A DNA stretch of 64,000 bases. It comes from Klebsormidium nitens (lineage: Eukaryota > Plantae > Klebsormidiophyceae). The first letter of the stretch is position 1. Every line of letters begins with the position of its first letter. The translations under genes and the position numbers were made by a program. A model generated the notes under the pieces. That model saw only the letters and a list, made by a program, of their open reading frames with translations. It did not search any database and was not told the DNA's origin. Where the stretch lies: NCBI GenBank assembly GCA_000708835.1, contig DF237014.1:62001-126000 (forward strand). Reading direction: 5' to 3'. This document shows, piece by piece, positions 7,215-23,400 of the stretch.

Positions 7215-9750
7215 CTACCTTTTGCGAACCCTCATGACCCGAGCCCTACCTATGTTTTCGATAAGAATCGCCTGAGGAATCGGCCTCTTTCTGCAACCAG
7301 AATCTTGAAGGTTATCCTGGGTTGAGTTCTTTGTGCCGGTTGAAACTTTCTGCCTCTCGTTCAAAAGCTCAGATTTAGGCTCTTCGTTCTGCTCTTTCCC
7401 GACTTCGACACATTTCTCTTTCTCCGAGGACTGAGCTTCCAATCCTTCAGCTCTCGATCCGCCTGGTAGATTGTCGTCAACTGCGTCCACCCCGGACGTT
7501 TGCGTAGCCATCTCGACCGTCTCGTTGTGGTCTGAAAGTTTCTTTCGAATGCCGTCTTTGAAGAGTTGTGCTAGGTCCTCATCGACCTCCGCTTTTTCCT
7601 TCACCCACGGCCTTACAACCGGCATAGAAGGCTCCGCATTGATGAGCGGTTGTTCTTTGGAGTACTTTTGGGTTTGGTGTGACTCTTTCGTCTCAACATC
7701 CCAGTGAACGTGTACTGAACGGCTAGTCTTTTCTGCCAAAGGATTTTCTTTCAACGCCGATTTCAGATGAATTGCTTTTGTGGGATTTGGGAAGGTCTCA
7801 GGCGCTTCCTCCTGCCTTTCCAGCTCGTCCTCCCATAGTTCCGTTGACATTTTGGACCTTCTACTGTTTTTCAGGAGAGAGGCTGGACCGGTGTGGTTGT
7901 TTTGGTGGTGAAGCTCTGAACCACCCATCGTGACATGGACGGCACGGATAGAGTCTTTTGGAATCTTGTTGGCCTGAGAAGCTGTTGGCCGTAAGCTCGC
8001 CTTATTATGCGGAGGAAGACCGGCTTCGAAAGACTGCGAAAAGAGAAAATGATTGCTTTCAGCACACTTAACTTAGTGGAAGAAGATAAGAATCTGCGTA
8101 GGTCGTCCCCTTCATTGAGAGTTAATCATCTGCGTTAGTCCCTACATCAGCTGTTACTTAAACCGTACCTTCGCAACTATGGACGCCGTGTCCGGATGGT
8201 GGATGTTGGTTCTGAGCATTCCAGCCACTTCTTCGCGGAGGGCCTTGAAGAAGCTCTTCGTCCGCACTGCAAATCGCTGCTGAGATGTCATGCTCAGTGC
8301 GTACATCAGCACTTCGGAATTTGTTATGCGTCAAAGCGTTGGCCGCATCCTATCAGCACTATTGACGCTTGGAGGTACGGACAAGGAAAAGAACCTCAGC
8401 AGGCGACTTTTGCCTACCTTGCTCCTTCAGGACTACCCTTAGAACGCTTCGTACATCTTTGTTTTCTTCCTGTATGTTTTTGAGATCTTCTTGCAACCGT
8501 TGGCTGTCCTCATCGTAATGCCTGTCTCCTTCTTCGATAAGCCATTGAGCTCCTTTCATACGTCTTGCTTGATCTGGACGGTAACGTAAGACAGAGCGTC
8601 GGATAGTGGAAACGAGAGACAAATTAAAGGAGGGAAGTATGCATTTTCGGCATTTGGATCAGTGCTTTACAACGTGGCAGACACCAGAGTCTAACAGATT
8701 TTCAGGGATATAATATTCATCAAAGCCTTGAGTTGGCCTGCAAAACCCACCTTCAAGCTGTTTTTGCATGTCAGAAACTTTGCGATCAACGGACGAAGCG
8801 ACAGCTGACAGCTTAAACTCCCTGCAAAGGTATCGAATTCAAGATGAACCACGAAAACAAATGATTAGCCACTGGCAAATTCTTCCAGAAGGAAGGTTAT
8901 AACTCACTGCAGGCCTGTCAAGGTTTGAATTGAACTGTTCTTTAGCAAAGCTAGCATAATTCATAGGATCATGAGTGTCTTAGCGAACTCACATCTTGTC
9001 CTCGATGCGCCGTTCGAGGGCGGCGGACTGATCTTGCAAGCTTTTGGTCACCAGACCGACTGCTTCGTGAAACCTGACTTCATCCTTGCTCTTTGCCTGC
9101 TTCTGAATCTTTTTGATCGCCTCAGTGATTGCTTCGACATCGCTGCAACATGCACAGGTCCAGAAGGTCAGATCTTGAAAAAACCCGGACAAAGAAGCAT
9201 CTGGCTCTTCATCGAAACACTCAGGAAATGCTCAAGTTTCTCGGATGTTTGCAGAATGCATAATACAGTATGTACCCACCTGCAGATGTCGAAAGTCTGA
9301 TCTTCTGCACGTTGTTGATCACCTGCAAGTCGGAGTGGAGCTCAGTGACATGTGTAGCCTACAAGACCAGATTGGAGACCTAACGTACCTAAACCGACTC
9401 AAAAGCCATTGAAAGAAGTTTCCTATGGTAGATCTTCACACACGCTCTTGCACCTGAAGACAAGCAAGAACTTAAGTCGAGTTACCTGGTACACTCTTGT
9501 GGCTGCGTCTATCCATCACGTACTTCTTTTGCTCCTCCTTTTCATTTTCGCTCACAGGATTTTCTGGTGTCTCTTCTCCGTCCAATTGTTGCCTGCGTGA
9601 ATGGCGTGGTGACTGCCTGTCTGCCTCTTCATGATTGCTTTCGTTGTCTTCCATCAAGACATCTTTGCCTTCCATCGCTTTTAGAAGTCTGTGCCGCCGT
9701 GCAACCCTCGAAAATCGTCTATCTATCCGCGCTGCATCAGCTTTCGACAT
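7215..9750 (-). CDS. ~533-aa coiled-coil protein, candidate ASY4/SYCP3-like meiotic axis subunit with a long disordered C-terminal tail; 7 exons
   Basis: Exons 9750-9486, 9322-9280, 9142-8993, 8821-8751, 8573-8418, 8266-8169, 8033-7215 are GT-AG and total 1602 nt in frame. The central heptad region FDICSDVEAITEAIKKIQKQAK...EAVGLVTKSLQ...LERRIE resembles my recollection of the ASY4 coiled-coil start. The gene model is more certain than the family call. Confidence 0.6.
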
Positions 9751-11014: not shown

Positions 11015-14000
11015 ATGGAAAGCAGCGGAGAGGATGTTGAAACTGGCGGCTATGAGGATGTTGTTGAGCTGATAGCAGCTGCTGAGGCGGACGAAGAACT
11101 TCCACGGGCAAGCAGGGACCTTGTTAAGAAAGTGCACATAGTTCTTGAAGGTGCTGTACTGCGCAAGAGGAGTATCGACGCAAGCCTAGCCAAAAGAGTG
11201 TTGAAAGTGATTCGAGCCCTTCTTCCCTCCAGCCTTAGAGAAGTTCTTGAAGAAGAGACGGTCGAAAAGCTCGGAGACATCTTTGATGCTCTTTTCAGGC
11301 CAGAGAAGCAGACCGGAACGACCTTTGCTGTCTTGGGGGACGTTCTATACACTGTGGAGGATCTTTGTGATACGAAAGAAGGTACATCGAAATACAAAGA
11401 CTAGGCTGTGCTTGGGAGATTCGCATGCTTCAAAGGAGAATCTGCGAATGGCAATATTGTGGAGGAGGAAAGATATGACGTACTGCTAGACTCACTGGTA
11501 CGTTCTGGGTTAAAATTTGCTGATGGAAGCACGTATCATTGAAAACTTGAGGTGCGATGCTTCTTGTTCCATCCAGCTTAAAGTGGACGCTTACATTCTG
11601 CAGGCAGGGAGAAGTGCGGTCCATGCTTCATCCCCAGACTGGTCAGACTGCAATATGGTAGGCTTCCTTTCAAAGTACGACGGGCGGCTATTGAGAGCTT
11701 ATCAGCCATCACAGAAGGAAGTGCTGCCAATCTGAAGGAGCTCCTGAAGCTCGAGAAAGATTGGTAAGGTCCTACCATATGCAATACCAATTTGAAGACA
11801 CCTGCATTAGATGAGCTCAAAAATGGACTGAAAGAGCTGCGGGAAGGATAAAAGACCGCTTCTAGATTCGACTGGACTTTTCACGTCTCAAGATAGTGCC
11901 ACTGACATAGATTTGTGATTTCTGCAGCACCATTCTCTTCACTCAAACACTTCCGAGCTGTGGGGATTTCCTGACCCAAGCAAGCATACTTGGTGAGTCC
12001 TATTAACCTTTGGTCTAGAGGATCTGAGCATTCTGACTTGAACGCGAAAACCGTTGTACTGAAAAGCGAGCTTTTAGTTTTCCAGCTTCCTGTGAAAGGT
12101 ACAAGTATCAAGACTTGGGGTGTGATAATCCGTTCTCATCTGTCATCTCAAGCTGGTCCGCTATTCCATCTTACATACGGATCAAGGTGATTGCAAAGTT
12201 GGCATGTTTACCATCAAATCATCCTTTCTGCAGAAATACTGTACCGGATCGTGCGGAAGCAGTCCTCTTTGCTTCAAACCGGTTTCTGCGGAGTGGAAAA
12301 ATGGAGAAAGTCTCTAAAAGAAGAGTTCTTGATGATTGCGAAGAAGCGGGATCCAGAGCTTTACAAGGAAATTAGAGCCTTCCTACTCTCGTACAACGCT
12401 TCACTAGGAGCAGCTCGCAGGTGAGTGTGAAGCAGTAGGACCAATATCGAGTGCTTAGCCTGATATCGTTGTTCAGATCCAACACATTCTTGCCTGTTCA
12501 TCATTCTCCAGGGCTTGGCAAGTGATGTCTCATGCTGTTTTAGGGCAATGGTTGTGAATCCATCCCAGGATTTTCAGACCAACGGGTTTATCCTCCTCAC
12601 AGCGTCTTTTCGGTCGAGTTCGAGAGGATCGTCATAGACGGAAATGAAGCGACGGCGGTGACGGACAGATGGCTGGATTTTGGTTCCAATCACGTCTCCT
12701 TCTACGCTTTAAATGAAGAGGTGCGATTTGCAATCTTTCAAAGGAATCAGATAATCAGGTTCTCAGGCACTGCATGTTTGGATTGTGCGGCATAATTTTC
12801 AATTTCGCAAGCCTGTGTCAGACCTAAATTGACTGATTTTTGATGCGGAGACAAGGGTCTCGACGTCTGCATGGCTTACTTGATAAACACAGAAAGCATA
12901 GACGCGCACGAAGAAATATTTCATCCGTTCTGCAGGACAAACGGCTGGAAGCAGACGAGGAGGGGGCAGCGCTTGTCGACCTTCCTTACGGGAGAATACT
13001 GGACCTAAAACGTTCGTGAACTTTTGATTTACAATCAATGAGATTTTTGAGAGTTGGAATATGATTATCAGTGAGAGAAAACTTCAAACGTCTTCATTGA
13101 ACACACTGCTTTCTTCTGAGGTCTCTCGAGAGGATACTGATAGACCTTCACTCCACTCTTCCCGGAAATACGCGAGACTTGTCTGCAGGTTCTTCTGCAA
13201 CAACTCTCAGCCTGGTGGCAAAGTCGGCGGCGGCCGGGCTCGCAAGCGCGCAGGTACTATCCGTATCCAATTCCGTCATCTGCTTTGGAAGTGAAAATGC
13301 TTTTCCTTCGTTTAGGAGGACTTTGCAAGCAGAGATACATGTTTTTCTCATCCCCTACACAGCAGTACGGCTTTCCTTCTCGTTTTCACGACACATCCTT
13401 CATATCATGCAGTTCTCGCAAAACGCCCAGTCTACGAAGGAAGTTAGTATCGAGATGAAGGACAAAGGTGAGTAAGTACATGCTCCATTGTCTTTGGGTA
13501 CCCTTGCCGTCAATTTTGCAGCGTGTACTCTGCGAGTACCGTGTTCAGAAAGAACGTACAAAAACTTGCGAAAGACATCTTTACTACAGAGAAGAGTTGC
13601 GACACTCGTTAACGATTTCATTCGTACTGGCTGCGCAGAGATGGTCACCGTCGAGCGAGTCATCTTGCCATGGCTGAACAGCAAAAACAAGCAGGTAGGT
13701 CAATCTTGACCTGCAAAAGTGACATCCTTTCGGCTTATTGAGCAGCTTCGGAAGAGGCGTTTCACCTCATGAGACGCGGCTAGCTCCTGTTGTAACCTCA
13801 ACGCCGCCGAACAGAGCCGGAAAATGTCCCCTATCACAGCGTGCTATGGTTTTCCCTTTAAGAGCAAACACTTGCTGGAGGTAGATTTGCAAACTATAAA
13901 ATGCTTAAGTCTTGCACCTGAAGGAGATTAGACTGCCTGCCTCTTGTGGCTCGGCTGTGCATGTTAACATAGTACAAACTTGGTCCAACTTCTTCTTGAG

Positions 14001-17000
14001 ACGGCTGCTCTCATTGCGCATTGCCCGAGATGTAGTACTTTGCAGGCCTTCCCTTCGCTGCAATCAAAAGGACTCGGTCGAGAAAACTCTGCATCATCAT
14101 CAAGGGCACCTCTCAACAGTGGAAGCATCGTAGGCTCAAGAAATCAGGGCAGCATAAGGAAAGCTTCGATCGGCATCCTACCCGGGAGGTCTGCGTCGAA
14201 GGTTAGCAGACTGATAGAAGTTTAAATCCAGTACCTCGTGAGTTTCAAGAGCTTTTGCCTTGCAGATCACAAGATATCCGTATGTGGTATCGTCATACGG
14301 TTTTCTCATCCTCCGGTCGATTTTGTGCAGTGTTCACAATTGAAAGGACGAAAGAGCCAGCTCAGTGACAGCATACTAACAGTTCTCCATTTTGCAGGAT
14401 TTACCTCAAGAGCTCGTCAAGGGGCCGCTCCACCTTGTCAGCACACGAACACCCGAACGTGCTGACAACAACAAAGAAAATCTTCCTCCAAACAATAATA
14501 ATGCTTTATCCTCACCACGGAAAGAAGGAGGCAAAATGACGACCAGACTGGACCCCGAGCTACATAATTGGGAAGATGTATTCAGACAGCCTCAAGGACC
14601 TGAAGACCACAGAGGTGCGTCGAACAAGAAGCGGCGCGTGTTTGCACTGGAGCCTTTGCATCTCGAAAGTTTGGTCTATGATACGTTGATACGTTGTTCT
14701 TAATAAGATTGAGCGTCTGATCGCTCGAGCTAGCTTCGCGCCTGTCCAACTGATATAACCTTATCTTCGAACTTACTTCAAGATCGTTCAGGTAGTGCGT
14801 CACGTGCAACGCTGAGGTGCCTTGGTAGCAGAAGTTGCACTCTACAGGTAGATTTTAACCTCTCTGATAAGCTGAAAATTTGAAGAATCTTTTTTGCAGA
14901 GACTCACTGTACGGCTTTCCAAGAAACAAGAAACGACCGGAAAGAGCTGACGCATCAAGAACACTCTTGCGGTGACAGAAGCGATATGCCGATCGAGATG
15001 TTGCGACAGCAAGTCCGAGGGCTTCAAGAGAAGGATAAGTGCAGACCAGCAGCAGGTGAGAATGACGATACACCCCTTCTTTCGGGCATCGTTGCGGGTT
15101 TCTTCCTGATCTTGGAACCTTTTCTTCATAGTTCTAACTAACCTTTACTGTCCAGAGCTTTTCGGAGGCGTATACCATACTTCTGCTTTCTGGAAGAATT
15201 GAGCCAGGTTATCTAAAAACAGGCGAAGCTTGCAAGAGGAGAATCCAGTCAAGCTTTCTAAACCAAAGAACATGCTCGTATTACAGAGGATGCGGATGGC
15301 CGAGGCAAAAAGGGAGGTGCGAAAAGGAGGGGCGAAGGTGGGGAAAAAGCAGATGAGGCAAACAAAGAGCTCTCAGAAAGGGATAAATCCTCCGCTGACG
15401 ATGACGACAGTACGAGAGCTGTAAATATCGGCAAGGATGCCGGTGTTGCAATCAAGAGCCACAGGGCTCTTAGGATTCCTCCAAAGCAGAACAAAGTCGA
15501 ATCTTCTAGCCCCGAGGGTGGGAAGAAGCCAGAGAAGGAAGCTGATACTGGGAGCCCGCACAATATCGGCGCAAAAGGCGGAGGAAAGGACGTGGCCGCA
15601 AGAGAGATGCAAGCGGCAAAAGTTCCTAAGGAATCTGTTAACCAGAAATACATTGCTAAGGGCAAATCAGAAGGGAGAAAAGTTGACAGAACGAAGGAAA
15701 ACAATCATGGCGCTTTCGAGTTCAAAGCTGATGAAGGCAAAGACAAAATAGAAGCGGAGAAAGAAGGCAGACTGCCCTCCAAAAAGCAGGGCGGACCAGC
15801 TAAACGAGGCGCAAACGAAAAGGAGGCAGTCCGGAATGACGGAAATGCCAACGGACAGCCTGATGATGAAGAAAAGGATCAGGTAAGATTCCTCAGGCTT
15901 TGTAATTGGGCATCCAAATGTGCGATAGTAAAGGGAGTCAAAATGTATCAAACTCTTCTTATTCCGAAGCGGGACAAGATGTGAAATTTTGTTTATGATT
16001 TCGAACTGCAGATCGACCATGGTAAATCCTACAGACCTACATTGGGATCCGACCCGATCGAGACGGACAGCGAGGCGCGTGGATTTGAAGCACAACCCAA
16101 AGCTGTCAAACGCGGAGCAAAAAGAGGGTGGCGGTCCGCGAAGAAAACCAATGACAAGCAGAAGGCCCGCCCGTCAAATGCGCAGAAATCGAGAGCATCT
16201 CAATCTGAGGAGGGCAAAAACGTAAGAACTTCACTCTAAAAGCCACCACGAGCTCACGACCTGATCCCAACGAGTGAATGCATCAAAAGGTGATCAGAAT
16301 CTACTAGCATTTTTAGTCTGCTGACTAATCTCTGAGGCAAAGGTTCTGAGAAAGCTTTCACAACAACTTTCAAATGAATCCTGCTTTGAATCATGAAGAT
16401 TCCGATGTTATCCCTAAGCACGTTAAACTCACTAACAGCCGGAAGGTTGATTGTTCTTGAACTCAAGGCTTCAACTACAGTAAGAATGCGTAATCATTAC
16501 CATCATCAACCTGCAGGAGGACAAAGATAAGAAATTGGATGGTGCCGTCAATCAAAAGAGTGTTGCTGTCCGCGCTTTGCAAAGGCGACAAAGTAGAACA
16601 AATCAACCCGACTCCGGTAAGCGGCGTCGAACTGTACAATCCTGTGATCGAACTTCTGCTAGTTCCAATGACGGCCGTAGGAGGGTTTTTTACCGAGCTT
16701 GCAGCTTGCTAGGGTCTGACTTCCTGAAGTGCTGGCTGACGGCTTTCGTACAAAGAACAATCTTTAGTACACAAAGTTGCTTCACCCATGCGATCAAAAA
16801 ATGCTTGCCTAGATCGTGTGCGATGCCACTGTCCGTAACAATAGTGATTCAACGGATTGATCAACCGCCTGTGTTCCGCAGAAGGAGATGCCTTCGACAT
16901 CCTACCGAAAGCTGCTGCGTGTGATCCAGAAAAAGTGAGTTTTGACTGCTGAAAATCACGTCGAGAAGATTGTACTCATGATGGTGAGAAAGTCGCTTAG

Positions 17001-19646
17001 CATTTCTCTGTAAGCGACGCCTGCTAATTGTACTATTTGCAATTATCTGACGAGACTCCCAGGCAACTAAAGAAGAACAATCACATCGAAATCATAGAAC
17101 TTCTCGGACCCTGCAGGGTGATAGTCCACGTACCCCGCTTCGGGGGGTTCAGCAGCGCTCAGAGTCTCCGGCGCCTCAGCTTAGGCGCGACAGCATGTAC
17201 CAGGATGAGCAACAACAAGTTGAAGAAGCCCTGGCTTATCTGCTTGAGGAGGAGGACCCTGATCAGACGAAAGGGAACTCCACCTGGAAGTCGGGAGATG
17301 ACACAACAGCGGGAGCTCCAGAGGCGAAGCTGGACTTGAATCCTGCACGCAGAAAGCCCCTGAAGCTGAAGACCGGGAAGCGGCAAGACGAAAGTGAAGA
17401 CAAGAAGCCCGCAAATTTGGAGGTGGGCTTGCCTGTGTCATCTGCTCTATGATCTTCCCCTATTTCTACAACGAAGGGGTCTTTCGTATAGCGATCACGT
17501 TGCGAGGTAGAAATTGTTTTACATTTGCACTCCTGGACGGTAGCTCTAAGAATATTCTAGGCGATGAAGATGGGCGCGCAGGTTCTTTTCCCTCCGAGAA
17601 GGGTAACATAACATGTGCGTGGTCTAATGAAAAGTTCAATGATCTGATTCCGACCATCAACTTCACTGCAAAGATTCATCTTTTCTGACGCTTCAACCAG
17701 ACTGTGTACAGTTGTCTGCCTGGAACGAAGACCTTCCTGATGCCGGCTTCGACGCACTGGAAGACCCCCCGCTTTCTCCAGCTCTTACTCCAGAAGGTGA
17801 GTAGCCTGGATCAGCTTGGCTCGGTAAAGCTCGTCCGTGATCGACACAACCACTCATCTGTGTGGCTGCCTGATTGTTATGCTTTCGAAATGAAAGAAAC
17901 GTCGACGTTCCACATGCAGAAGAAGCGCCTCTCAGGCTTCTCGCCGACCTCCCAAAGTCAGAGCGTCATTTGAGAAACGCCCGCCGAAATGGAGTCGGCA
18001 CCGAGGTCAAGAGCGCCAAGCCTTCTGAGAAAGAAAAGCCTGCACGCAAAAGTGCCCCTGCCCCAATTGACACTCTTCTACTGGAAACAGCTGCAGTCGA
18101 GGAAGAGCTGTTGGGAACGCCTGGTAAGTAATAGATTCGTCCACAAATTTAACACGTTTGATACGTGTCTCTCGTAAAAACATGTGATTCTTGATCCAAT
18201 TTTCAAAGGCTGGTAGTTGCACCCGAATGTGATCCGACGAGCATACGCTTACAGCGGGCGGTGGATTGGAGCCTAATTACTAAAACAGACACTGTCTATT
18301 CATGCAGACGAAGGTCTTCTGGATACGGAAGGAGGGACCGACGAGGGTGGACTCGGAGGGTAAGCTCTTCTTGGGTGGCTTTTGGACCTCGGCAAGTCTT
18401 CTCACGGATCCAGACTTGCTATCGAGGAAGATGAATTTTGTCTTCGATAGCTTGTTCTCGTTCCTCTGGCCAAGCGTTCTCACTGGTTCATGTTGTATGC
18501 AGAGCGGTCAAGATGATTGCCAAGATGGTGACGCAGCTGAAAGGCAAGATGAAGCTACAGTCCAAGAGGAAAGCGTCCAGCATCGTGGAGGATGCTAAGG
18601 AAGCCATGCAGGCGGAGATGCTCAAAGTCCAGAAGAAGGTCAAGAAAGACAGGTGACTTCTTATCCCGTTAACAATCTCTTACCTGATGTCCTGTTGAGA
18701 TCTCGTCTATGTCTCCTTTTCATGTAGGCGGACGTTTTTAAAGATTCCTTGAGTACCTTTATAACTCAGTTAGCATCTCTCTTTTGCAGTGACGAGTGCA
18801 TCCGCGTCTGCAAACGCAAGTTCGGCACAATTGAGGCCCAATTGCAAGGTATGTAAGGAGCCAAACGCACCATGCAATCATACGCTGTGGGCTCCGCGTG
18901 ATGCATCAGTGACCTTTTTCACCGCGGGCTCCACGTGATGCGGGTGGCGTTGAACCTACGCCGTTCTTCCTGACTTGTCAGAATTCCATAGGGAGCAGGA
19001 TAACAAGAAGAAAGACAGAAGTTCCCGGCCGTTGACGTAAAAATGCTGAAATGTCTTGCAGCCCACAGCAAAAAGATGAAGATGCTTCATGACAAGTTCC
19101 AGGCAGACTTCAAGCAACAATTGGACGAGTACGAGAACACGTTTGCGCATATGGACGACGCCAAGGTGGACATGAAAGAAGCGATCGACAAGACGAGTAA
19201 GTGGTCCCGGTCTAGCAACGATCAATTATAGCTTGGTCCTATGCAGAGTCTCGCCTGTCTTTCCCGAAAGGTCGACTCCCTCTCAGCGACTTACAGTGGG
19301 CGAACTTTCTGCAGAAGCTGCTCACAAGAAGTTGTTCGAGCAAGCTCAGGAGAGCGCCACCGAGATCCTTCAACAGACAGAGAAGAAGCTGCAGTCCATT
19401 AACAAGGTACGTAGACCGCTTCTCTTTCTCCTTCAACTATCGATAATTCACGGTATGATCTTCAAATAGTGCAACACAAAAGTCACGATGTTGTCTTGCT
19501 GGAAGCAGGAGGAAAATAGCACTCAACGCAGATATCCTGTGAGTTGCGCTGCTCAGCGCTGCGCATTTACGCCTCACAATTTGTTGCAGGGTGCACGCGA
19601 AATGAAGGCGCTACGTCAGGCCCTAGTCGGTATCACTGCCCTGTGA
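11015..19646 (+). CDS. ASY3: Meiotic chromosome axis core protein: ASY3/PAIR3-like with a SYCP2/Red1-type ARM + PH N-terminus; ~1297 aa, 25 exons
   Basis: Exons 11015-11381, 11604-11763, 11928-11992, 12234-12420, 12603-12720, 12936-13011, 13189-13253, 13413-13467, 13522-13694, 14046-14201, 14398-14614, 14900-15055, 15287-15882, 16012-16221, 16517-16616, 16882-16934, 17117-17422, 17712-17796, 17920-18123, 18308-18359, 18503-18652, 18790-18848, 19062-19196, 19315-19406, 19590-19646 are all GT-AG and total 3894 nt in frame. The C-terminus (GLGGAVKMIA...KMKMLHDKFQADFKQQLDEY...HKKLFEQ...KKLQSINKGAREMKALRQ) matches the ASY3 coiled coil as I recall it. N-terminal GDFLTQASILEILYRI, RAFLLSYNASLGAARSVF and WLDFGSNHVSFY match SYCP2 ARM/PH motifs as I recall them. 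Confidence 0.8.
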
Positions 19647-20465: not shown

Positions 20466-23400
20466 CTACTTTCGAGCGGATTTTTTTGGCCGCCTTTCGC
20501 TCTCGCTGTCACTCTCGCTGTCCGAGTAGGAACTACCCGAGAACGAGCTACCACTCCCCGAATTAGAATAGTCGCTCTCAGAACTTGCACGACGCTTGCT
20601 AGCCCGCTGCGCCTTCGGAGCTTCCTTCGTCACCTTCTTCAAAAGGTCGTCTCCCTTTTCGGCTGCCTTTGCAGACTTCGCTTCGGCCCCGGGCCTACCC
20701 TTCTTCCTCGCAGGCTCGTCATCCGACTCGCTCTCACTGAGCGGCCTCTTGGCCGGAACCCCTTTGCCCCTCGCTCTCTCGAAGCGCTCCTCGTCTTCCA
20801 AGTCCGACTCGTTGGGCTTCTGTCTCTTGCTCACCCCCCTCTCTGGCACGTCCCGGACTGGAGGGCTGTCGGCGCGCCGCTTTGCAGCCGCCACAACGGG
20901 CGCCACTGCTCGCTCGACCGCAGCCTGATCTTCCTCCTCGTCACGGCGCACCCTTTTGACCCGCGCCTCCTCTTCGGAGTCGGACACCGGCCGCCCCTTG
21001 GGCACGCCAGGCGCCGCCTCAAGGCCCTCATGCAAAAGGTCGTCAGGCGCAGCCCTCCCTCTCGCCCCCTCCGGCGCAGCTCGCTTGCGGACCGGCGACT
21101 CGTCCTCTGACGACGACCCGCTCAGCGAGTCGCTGTAACTATCTGAAGACTCCGAAACCGCTCTCTTTGCTGGCGGCTTCTTGGCCCCCTCCCCCACTGA
21201 CTTGCCCGCCCGTCCAGGGGACCTAGACCTGTCCCGTTCGTCTGGAGACAGAGCCTTTGGCCTCCTGCTGGGCACGACCGGCGAGTCTCCCGCAGGCGCT
21301 ATCGGCGACCGGCCCAGAGGCGCGGGCGACCTGGAGCTCGAAGGGCTCCGCCTACGAGGAGGGGAGCGCTCCCTCCTTCCCCCCTCCCGGCCATTCCTGC
21401 CGCGGGCCGGGGACTCATCACGCGCTCCCCTCCTACGCTCATCGTAACCCCTAGGCACTGGCGAGCGCCTCCGGGGGGGGGACCTTGCACGGAAAGGAGA
21501 GGGCCTCCGTCCACGTCCAGGGGGGCTGTCGTGGCGGAACCTCCCCCCCCGGGGAGGGGGCGGACTCTCCCGCCTGAGCCTGCCCCCGCGGTACGGCGAT
21601 GCAGCCCGCCTAGGTGGGGACCGGCCACGCCTGTCTGGAGACAACCTGCGCCTGGGCGGGGGGCTGACGCTCCTGCGGGGCGATCCGGACTCCCTGCGAA
21701 TGTCTCTTCTCGGCGGAGGAGGGATGTCTCTGCTCAGAGACCGATCCCTTCTCGGTGGCGGGGAACGGGTCACCCTCGGATGAACGGCTGGAGAAGGCCT
21801 CCTCTCCACTTCTCTTCTTGGGGGTGGGCTCACGGAGCGCTCGGGCGAAACGACTGGCGAGGCTTCTTTCCTTCTGGGGGGTGTGTCTGCTCTGCGCCCG
21901 CGCTCAGCTGACCTCCCCCTCTTTGGCAGATCTTCTGGGCTTCGGACTTGGGGCCTTGCAACTGCCCTCTCCTCAGTGTTCTTACCCCTGGACCCCTCAG
22001 GTTCAATTTCGGAGGGACTGTCGTGCCTCACTTTCTTCCCGTTGATTGGCGCTGTCGGCGCCGCCGCTCGCTTCTTCTTCCGCAGAGCCTCTCTTTCGCT
22101 CTCAGGGTCGCTCTCGCTCAGCTCGCTCTCGCTCGAGGAGAGCTCTGACTCGCTCTCTGACTCGCTGTCGTAGCGGCCCGTCTTCCTTCGTTCGTCCCTC
22201 CCACGTGACTTCTCTCCCGACTTGGCTGCTGAGCGAGCGTCTTCTTTTCGCCCCTTGCTCTCCTTTCTGCCCCTCCCCTTTTTGCTCCTTGCAATCTCAT
22301 CATCATCCTTCCGTCCCGATCTAGCCTTGCCACTCCTTTCCCCCACTTCCTCTTCTTCGCTGTCGTACCTTCGTCTTTTGTCCGTCCCCGCTCTGCCATT
22401 CTTCGGCTCATCCTCAAGCTGCCACCTGTCTTCCCCCCTGAGTTGTTTTGCTGCCTCTTCCGCCTTCTTTGCTTCAAGGGCCAGCCGCTCCGCCTCTTCC
22501 TCAGCAGCCCGCTTTGCCGCGGCTTTCTTCTCCTTCCTCAGCCTCCGCTCTTCCCTCTCCTTCTGCCGCTCCAGCTCGCGAGCCAAGCGCTTCTTCTCCT
22601 TCTTTTCCTCCTTTGCCTGCAAGAAAACGAGGAATAAATGTTAAGCCCAGTCTTGAGCTTTGAAGTCTATGCATGGACTGATGCAGGCCCCACGAGTCGA
22701 AAAGCAGCCTTGCAAGACTACCTGCAATGTCCGCAGCGCAAAAAAAAGCTTCCAAGAAAATCACCCAATACCTTCTCCAACCATATAGAGTGCCCTGGAC
22801 GCAACCCAGCAGACTGCAAATCTAGACAGTCAACAGCAGCTTGACAAACAGAATGAGCAAGAAGCTCTCGTTCACGGCATACGCAGGCAAACGTGGCCGA
22901 TAGAGGGCCAGATTCCCTTGAGGCGTGCTCACCTTCCGCTTGGCCGCCTTCTCTGCATCTTTCTTCGCCTTCTCCTCAGCCTCCTTCAGTATCCTCTCCT
23001 CTTCCTTCTTCGCTTCTCGCTCTGCAATCCTCTCGAGCTTCTTCTGCTCCTGAAGATCCCGGTCAAACGCCTCACCCTCCCGCACATTCTCAAGCCCCAG
23101 CGCATTCTGCAGGGAAGGAGATGAATCAGGATCCAAGTCAAAAACATGCCAAAAGCGGTTCAGCCAGTAGGCAGGACGCAGCAGAAGATCCGCAATTCAT
23201 TAAGACATGCCTATTCCCGCTCCACATGTAATCCTTTCACCAGCCTCCAACAAGACAACCTCAAATCTTTGCAATAACAAGCAGTTGACCAGATTTCAAT
23301 CTTTTGCTGCTACTTTTGTCAAACACCAAAGCTTGCTCTACCCTCCAACTCTAAAATACCAAAAGTATGGTACTTAAGGCACGCCACTAAACAACCTGCT

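Follow-up and report, generated by a model that had tools for sequence, protein, structure and literature searches.

An algal gene in Klebsormidium nitens that probably encodes the ASY3 meiotic axis protein in a long SYCP2/Red1-type form

A single gene of 24 or 25 exons in Klebsormidium nitens probably encodes a meiotic chromosome-axis core protein, the ASY3/PAIR3 orthologue in its ancestral long SYCP2/Red1-type form. It lies on the + strand at 11015-19646 of the window, the 64,000-nucleotide stretch of contig DF237014.1 that we analyzed. In our model, 25 GT-AG exons totaling 3777 nt form a stop-free ORF of 1258 aa, with start codon ATG at 11015 and stop codon TGA ending at 19646, with all 24 introns bounded by GT..AG and measuring 118-351 nt each. 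Splice sites were chosen by consensus before any frame check, and the first model already gave a stop-free ORF. A first-pass annotation of this DNA had proposed one phase-consistent 25-exon ORF of about 1297 aa, which holds for the single ORF but overstates its length by ~3%. The exons are listed below, with L002 and L004 denoting two related metagenome contigs and L001 a further relative.

Exon 1, 11015..11381, + strand: aa 1-122; start codon and opening helices of the N-terminal domain; L001, L002, and L004 keep both the ATG and the sequence
Exon 2, 11604..11763, + strand: aa 123-175; phase and splice sites match those of L001, L002, and L004; weak HEAT_2 match (E 0.047)
Exon 3, 11928..11992, + strand: aa 176-197; contains GDFLTQASIL; 91% identity to L002 and L004
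Exon 4, 12234..12420, + strand: aa 198-259; mouse SYCP2 (5iwz_A 257-284) has its best match in 12350-12420 together with exon 5 bases 12603-12615
Exon 5, 12603..12720, + strand: aa 260-299; contains WLDFGSNHVSFY; 80% identity to L002 and L004
Exon 6, 12936..13011, + strand: aa 300-324; orthologous exon with position and phase as predicted
Exon 7, 13189..13253, + strand: aa 325-346; orthologous exon
Exon 8, 13413..13467, + strand: aa 347-364; orthologous exon
Exon 9, 13639..13694, + strand: aa 365-383; closes the conserved N-terminal domain and is followed by intron 9
Exon 10, 14046..14201, + strand: aa 384-435; block 14079-14189 is near-invariant, has its core RKASIGIL at 14157-14180, and is a candidate HORMAD closure motif
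Exon 11, 14398..14614, + strand: aa 436-507; conserved motifs DLPQELVKGPL..LVSTRTPE and EL.NWE..FR.PQ, of putative function
Exon 12, 14900..15055, + strand: aa 508-559; poorly conserved
Exon 13, 15287..15882, + strand: aa 560-758; K/E/G-rich, 26% identity to orthologues, presumed disordered
Exon 14, 16012..16221, + strand: aa 759-828; motif RPTLGSDPIETDSE at 16033-16074
Exon 15, 16517..16616, + strand: aa 829-861; uncertain
Exon 16, 16882..16934, + strand: aa 862-879; uncertain
Exon 17, 17117..17422, + strand: aa 880-981; conserved RRDSM..VEEALAYLLEEE
Exon 18, 17712..17796, + strand: aa 982-1009; conserved WN..LPDAGFD
Exon 19, 17920..18123, + strand: aa 1010-1077; orthologous exon in relatives
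Exon 20, 18308..18359, + strand: aa 1078-1094; the coiled-coil domain opens with GLGGAV, which straddles the exon 20/21 junction
Exon 21, 18503..18652, + strand: aa 1095-1144; coiled coil, 88-90% identity to orthologues
Exon 22, 18790..18848, + strand: aa 1145-1164; coiled coil
Exon 23, 19062..19196, + strand: aa 1165-1209; coiled coil, matches Pfam PF20435 (ASY3-like)
Exon 24, 19315..19406, + strand: aa 1210-1240; coiled coil
Exon 25, 19590..19646, + strand: aa 1241-1258 and stop codon, whose place is unchanged in L002 and L004

We propose a four-part protein: 1) a domain of ~385 aa that is ordered and under strong constraint, most likely an ARM-like plus PH/Spt16M-like module that would anchor axis core proteins to chromosomes, 2) immediately behind it, a near-invariant basic-hydrophobic-basic peptide (..RKASIGILPGR..), most likely a closure motif to which an ASY1-type HORMAD would bind through its HORMA domain, 3) a fast-evolving, probably disordered linker of ~650 aa with short conserved motifs, at least one of which (SD.IETDSE) is common to Arabidopsis ASY3, and 4) a C-terminal coiled coil of ~165 aa that is homologous to, and as long as, the tetramer- and filament-forming domain of ASY3 and would be expected to form filaments too.

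Comparison with relatives shows that this is a real gene. Its orthologues on L002 and L004 have complete ORFs of 1239 or 1244 aa, keep the start and stop codons, and have splice sites at the positions and phases predicted from the window model. Both carry an extra intron after aa ~50, inside exon 1 of the window gene, and the exon 5 donor is GT in the window gene versus GC in L001, L002, and L004. Conservation in L001 extends over exons 1-6, with diverged introns. Exons 15-16 (aa 829-879) are uncertain because they have no counterpart in L002 or L004; skipping both together (153 nt) preserves the reading frame. An apparent lack of intron 9 in L002 was rejected, the long HSP being intron read-through and exon 9 having been located separately. 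All regions of the gene are under purifying selection, with dN/dS <1 throughout: between L002 and L004, the ratio is lowest in the coiled coil (0.06) and the N-terminal domain (0.09) and rises to 0.30 in exons 10-11 and 0.40 in the middle. When 1.84 billion representatives were searched with exon 1, only short ORF fragments of relatives and two spurious bacterial/phage proteins were returned, and metagenome scans with exon 1 gave no match. Word-index protein searches with exon 13, a neighboring 718-aa ORF, and the exon-4 alignment also gave no match, and none of the searches brought back proteins of the genome itself. The upstream gene was considered as an ASY4-like candidate and rejected, with no BLASTP or Pfam signal and a coiled-coil profile of E 0.5 or worse.

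The C-terminal coiled coil is homologous to that of ASY3, a bona fide axis core protein. In an exon-by-exon Pfam scan, exon 23 alone matched PF20435 (15.7 bits, E 0.0045, profile positions 701-741 of 793), a score to be read against a gathering threshold of 25.7 bits that applies to the whole protein; no ASY3-like match was reported for the other exons. The last ~165-167 aa can be aligned with the C terminus of Arabidopsis ASY3 without any gap, with identical spacing and 41 identities counted by eye. The best match of the Arabidopsis KMRM peptide is in exon 23, with a score of 62 reached by 0/3000 shuffles, and that of the peptide at the GLGGAV coiled-coil start (exon 20/21) was reached by 6/3000. 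These results bear out the placing of an ASY3 coiled coil in exons 20-25 by the first-pass annotation, whose three C-terminal peptides are found in exons 23 and 24 and across the 24/25 junction, and whose Arabidopsis strings (KMRMIHEKFKDD, HQKLIAH, and SVNKSAR) can all be found in the ASY3 sequence that PMC9957857 prints. The algal coiled coil has the length of that of Arabidopsis ASY3 and rice PAIR3, with which it shares the GLG.AV start, KM.M.H.KF, and S.NK.AR; it resembles ASY3 specifically, as opposed to mammalian SYCP2 or yeast Red1.

Upstream of the coiled coil, the likeness to Arabidopsis ASY3 extends as far as the candidate closure motif. The best matches of five Arabidopsis ASY3 peptides are collinear, at aa 410, 766, 1088, 1167, and 1232, and by these alignments Arabidopsis ASY3 appears to map onto aa ~410-1258 only. 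Therefore, angiosperm ASY3 would correspond to the part of the algal protein downstream of its ~385-aa N-terminal domain. At the first of these sites, the block of aa 395-431, a hydrophobic core flanked by basic residues, is near-invariant in three taxa. Its RK.SIG core is common to Arabidopsis ASY3 residues 18-25, and RK.SIG(V/I)(M/L) stands where ASY3 has its closure motif; the 28-mer of ASY3 residues 7-34 has its best-match site in the exon 10 block, with a score not above shuffles. In mammalian SYCP2, the closure motif (residues 395-414) likewise comes directly after the ordered N-terminal domain. Within the linker, the exon 14 motif RPTLGSDPIETDSE matches ..NSDSIETDSES.. of Arabidopsis ASY3, a match reached by 28/3000 shuffles, which gives both proteins an SD.IETDSE motif. 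The order of elements (closure-motif core, SD.IETDSE, and coiled coil) is the same, but the algal protein has a longer linker and ~400 extra N-terminal residues comprising a conserved ordered domain, unlike Arabidopsis ASY3 (793 aa), which begins at the closure motif.

What this N-terminal domain is can be approached through SYCP2, with whose ARM-PH N terminus the first-pass annotation had matched it. The three algal peptides on which that rested are present across the exon 3/4 and 4/5 junctions and in exon 5, and the human SYCP2 28-mer cited there corresponds to residues 257-284 of the mouse SYCP2 chain 5iwz_A. The mouse 28-mer has its best match at aa 237-264 of the algal protein, an equivalent position, with a score of 36 reached by 0/5000 shuffles, a count that overstates significance because the 28-mer was picked after the fact. 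The domain shares with mammalian SYCP2 one similar 28-residue stretch and its size, ~385 aa against the 401 residues of 5iwz_A. Statistically robust sequence or fold matches to the N-terminal domain of mammalian SYCP2 (5IWZ, ARLD and SLD) were lacking in our Pfam, PDB, AF2, and Foldseek queries, which were made with single exons of the domain: no exon piece matched Pfam SYCP2_ARLD or SYCP2_SLD, and per-exon phmmer and hmmsearch runs against the PDB never found 5IWZ. The AF2 model of exon 1 has five helices (pLDDT 77.5) in a generic alpha-solenoid; 5IWZ was absent from its top 50 Foldseek matches, and residues 14-145 of human SYCP2L ranked 8 in Swiss-Prot, in register. A protein-atlas look-up returned weak HEAT/ARM-flavored matches only (0.81), and Chou-Fasman propensities were discarded since they left helical and beta parts inseparable.

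It is conceivable, though unlikely, that the ~385 aa belong to the ASY3 gene yet adopt a different fold, such as a lineage-specific helical domain, and resemble SYCP2 by chance. The negative per-exon searches and the generic exon-1 fold matches would agree with this, as would the readiness with which short N-terminal motifs find chance partners, exon 5 matching the ADAM17 prodomain (E 9e-4) and the exon-5 motifs finding, as their sole match in metagenome scans, a bacterial contig that we rejected (L007). Against it, the domain has the size of the SYCP2 module and the same place before a closure-type motif, the verified 28-mer matches at the equivalent position, the SYCP2L N terminus is in the Swiss-Prot top 10, and published profile searches tie non-seed-plant ASY3 to ARM-PH. 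An ARM-like plus PH/Spt16M-like module is, in our view, the most likely fold. Of the SYCP2/Red1 architecture claimed in the first-pass annotation, one gene with an ordered N-terminal ~385 aa, a closure-motif-like block, a poorly conserved middle, and an ASY3 coiled coil stands; the ARM-PH identity of the N-terminal part is a prediction.

The unity of the gene turns on intron 9, at 351 nt its longest. Angiosperm ASY3 starts about where exon 10 starts, and the locus could be two adjacent units, an exons 1-9 gene and an ASY3-like gene from about exon 10, or have an internal promoter in intron 9 giving a short product too. Transcripts are silent either way: RNA runs of the alga contain next to none of the gene, with one unspliced 264-nt contig of depth 2 over 14815-15078 (exon 12), and no spliced transcript of it is among those listed for the organism. 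However, the exon 9-10 junction, like all others, keeps the phase and creates no in-frame stop in any of three taxa, exon 10 opens at a canonical acceptor without conserved ATG context in all three, constraint is continuous across the junction, and SYCP2 and Red1 normally have this joined architecture, leaving such a split with a slim chance. Slimmer by a shade is the prospect that the alga makes the long protein together with a short form, which would be initiated within intron 9 and open with the closure motif, a living intermediate of the seed-plant truncation; if so, the conserved linker motifs EL..WE..F, SD.IETDSE, and LPDAGFD would be partner-docking sites thanks to which the ARM-PH anchor could later be dispensed with. 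That the near-absence of RNA marks a pseudogene, decaying or unexpressed, in an alga that is mostly asexual is highly improbable given intact ORFs in three taxa and dN/dS of 0.06-0.40 across regions, and a gene whose expression is presumably meiotic would not be expected to be expressed in vegetative cultures.

A single gene for the long form of ASY3 agrees with the survey of Tromer et al. 2021 (PMC8131943), in which ASY3 lost the ARM and PH domains in Spermatophyta, and homologues outside Spermatophyta carry ARM-PH. That survey relied on conservation around the last ARM repeats and PH domain and on a C-terminal coiled coil; the algal gene has the same pattern as its Archaeplastida SYCP2-type genes, with an N-terminal domain whose fold is here a predicted one. 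The suggestion in the first-pass annotation that ASY3 arose by N-terminal truncation fits the collinearity, which places ASY3 downstream of the N-terminal domain, but is not new, having been published by Tromer et al. 2021. Because the principle was already in that work, this analysis adds a motif map and a validated gene model but no new concept. West et al. 2019 called the absence of the Red1/SYCP2 N-terminal domain from plant ASY3 a mystery. A long form in a streptophyte-type alga would place the truncation point at residue level, immediately upstream of the closure motif, and would show which linker motifs predate the truncation. It may also offer a natural comparison for what replaced the N-terminal domain as chromosome anchor in seed plants.

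The DNA at the ASY3/SYCP2-type meiotic chromosome-axis gene is eukaryotic, with short GT-AG introns. Open segments of the three + frames were tabulated, and splice sites were then picked with the consensus as sole criterion (mostly CTGCAG or TTGCAG at acceptors, GTRAGT-like sequences at donors). On first joining, these sites gave a stop-free ORF of 1258 aa in 25 exons totalling 3777 nt, which begins with the ATG at 11015 and ends with the TGA at 19646. The first-pass annotation had placed the start, end, and exon number of the gene correctly and was right to see a single phase-consistent ORF, but its length of about 1297 aa was too high, our model being ~3% shorter. All six peptides that it quoted were found, each in the exon named for it.

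When exon 1 was searched against 1.84 billion protein representatives, the matches in relatives were limited to short ORF fragments, at 79%, 64-67%, and 33% identity. We compared the window with contigs of these relatives: L001 (7.3 kb) and 20-kb stretches of two 36-38-kb metagenome contigs, L002 and L004. In L001, exons 1-6 are conserved and introns diverged, with splice sites coinciding with those of the window. In L002 and L004, collinear counterparts exist for 23 of the 25 exons, with canonical splice sites at the exact positions and phases predicted by the window model, and the spliced ORFs (1239 and 1244 aa) are complete and stop-free and share the start and stop of the window model. Exons 15-16, which together measure 153 nt, are uncertain, since they have no counterpart in L002/L004 and leaving them out does not shift the frame. 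Exon 1, undivided in the window and L001, is interrupted by an additional intron in L002 (9913-10162) and L004 (10151-10402); an intron has been gained or lost within this close group. At intron 5, the donor is GC (GAG|gcaagt) in L001 (~7074), L002 (11989), and L004 (12266), and GT in the window (12721). Three orthologous loci give the gene model good support.

Exons 1-7 and 9 are 63-91% identical to their L002 counterparts, exon 10 is 71% identical, exons 12-13 are 26-31% identical, and exons 21-24 are 87-90% identical. For L002-L004, the unsaturated pair, Nei-Gojobori dN/dS was 0.09 in the N-terminal domain, 0.30 in exons 10-11, 0.40 in the middle, and 0.06 in the coiled coil, which indicates that all parts are coding and constrained. 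Although computational, this is strong evidence that one gene is present and functional. Within the otherwise fast-evolving linker, short motifs common to the three taxa occur in exon 11 (14398-14614; EL.NWE..FR.PQ) and exons 17-18 (17117-17796; VEEALAYLLEEE and W N..LPDAGFD). Cohesin-interaction motifs have been described for Red1 and Arabidopsis ASY3 (bioRxiv 10.64898/2026.01.19.700424), which EL.NWE..FR.PQ loosely resembles.

RNA runs under the same species label contain next to none of the gene, as one would expect of a meiotic gene when cultures are vegetative. Among the RNA evidence listed, none was spliced: across 11015-17014, four RNA runs yielded one contig of 264 nt, unspliced and at depth 2 (14815-15078, run X34), which reads through exon 12 and both flanking introns and is either pre-mRNA or DNA carry-over. 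The transcript structure is a prediction from the gene model and unproven.

When exons were scanned singly, exon 23 alone matched Pfam PF20435 (ASY3-like; profile positions 701-741 of 793, E 0.0045), and no match was reported from the others. By eye, a gapless alignment of Arabidopsis ASY3 (sequence from PMC9957857) with aa ~1092-1258 has 41 identities over ~167 positions, and the spacing is identical in both proteins, with KM.M.H.KF beginning at residue 77 past the GLG start. Scored without gaps, five short Arabidopsis ASY3 peptides fit the model best at aa 410, 766, 1088, 1167, and 1232, which is their order in Arabidopsis. Among 3000 shuffles, 0 reached the score of the KMRM peptide, 6 that of the coiled-coil start, 28 that of the IETDSE peptide, 110 that of the C-terminal end, and 1377 that of the closure peptide, the last match not being significant. 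Alignment and peptide order make aa ~410-1258 collinear with the whole 793-aa Arabidopsis ASY3, which, in contrast, has no counterpart of the first ~400 algal residues. These comparisons bear out the ASY3-type coiled coil originally proposed for exons 20-25, and orthology of the C-terminal two thirds to ASY3 is well supported.

The N-terminal domain was tested as single exons only, none of which matched Pfam SYCP2_ARLD or SYCP2_SLD; exon 2 weakly matched HEAT_2. The mouse SYCP2 N-terminal structure 5IWZ was never recovered, either by phmmer with exons 1, 4, and 5 or by hmmsearch with four-sequence profiles of exons 4 and 5. The exon-5 profile gave a short match to the ADAM17 prodomain (E 9e-4), and scanning metagenomes with exon-5 motifs turned up a bacterial gene and nothing else, both of which illustrate that motifs this short readily produce chance matches. 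The human SYCP2 28-mer given in the first-pass annotation is genuine (5iwz_A 257-284, E 5e-12). Within the model, the best ungapped match of its mouse equivalent lies at aa 237-264, which is nearly the equivalent position, with a score of 36 (shuffles, 9.7 ± 4.8) reached by 0 of 5000 shuffles, a count that overstates significance because the peptide was picked after the fact. Size and position also fit (~385 aa, versus 401 residues for the 5iwz_A chain). An ARM-PH identity is plausible and, partly on literature grounds, probable.

Directly after this ordered domain, a block in exon 10 (aa 395-431) is nearly invariant in three taxa, with basic residues on both sides of a hydrophobic core (..IRKASIGILPGR..). 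This is the place of the closure motif in SYCP2 (residues 395-414) and also in Red1. RK.SIG in the block recurs at residues 18-25 of Arabidopsis ASY3, a match too short for significance, within a region (8-35) that binds the ASY1 HORMA domain (West et al. 2019). By analogy, it is a candidate closure motif.

Two further genes or frames flank the gene:
7215-~9800, minus strand, divergent neighbour gene, head-to-head with the ASY3-type gene
20466-22622, minus strand, open frame of 718 aa with an extremely high content of R, S, E, K, and P
The head-to-head arrangement is conserved, with neighbour orthologues at ~5389-8245 in L002 and ~5606-8463 in L004. The neighbour had no match in Pfam or by BLASTP against the ASY3 coiled-coil exons, and the ASY3 coiled-coil profile reached only E ~0.5, in the orthologue of exon 8992-9231 and in the expected register; an ASY4-like identity is neither supported nor excluded. 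In composition, the 718-aa frame resembles an SR- or RS-domain-like protein, and it had zero database proteins at E <= 1e-20.

From iterative profile searches, Tromer et al. 2021 (PMC8131943) report that ASY3 of Spermatophyta has lost the ARM and PH domains, which ASY3 homologues elsewhere retain. Their trees of the ARM-PH region and of the coiled coil cover Archaeplastida, with two ASY3 copies in Chlamydomonas, for example, and they give as diagnostic the last ARM repeats and PH domain, together with the C-terminal coiled coil. The three N-terminal motifs picked out in the first-pass annotation fall exactly in that region (last ARM repeats and PH). ASY3 has also been detected in chlorophytes and charophytes (Thangavel et al. 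2023, PMC9957857). Given these two studies, the evolutionary inference drawn in that annotation was already published: the concept is known, and the Klebsormidium nitens gene is a further member of that kind.
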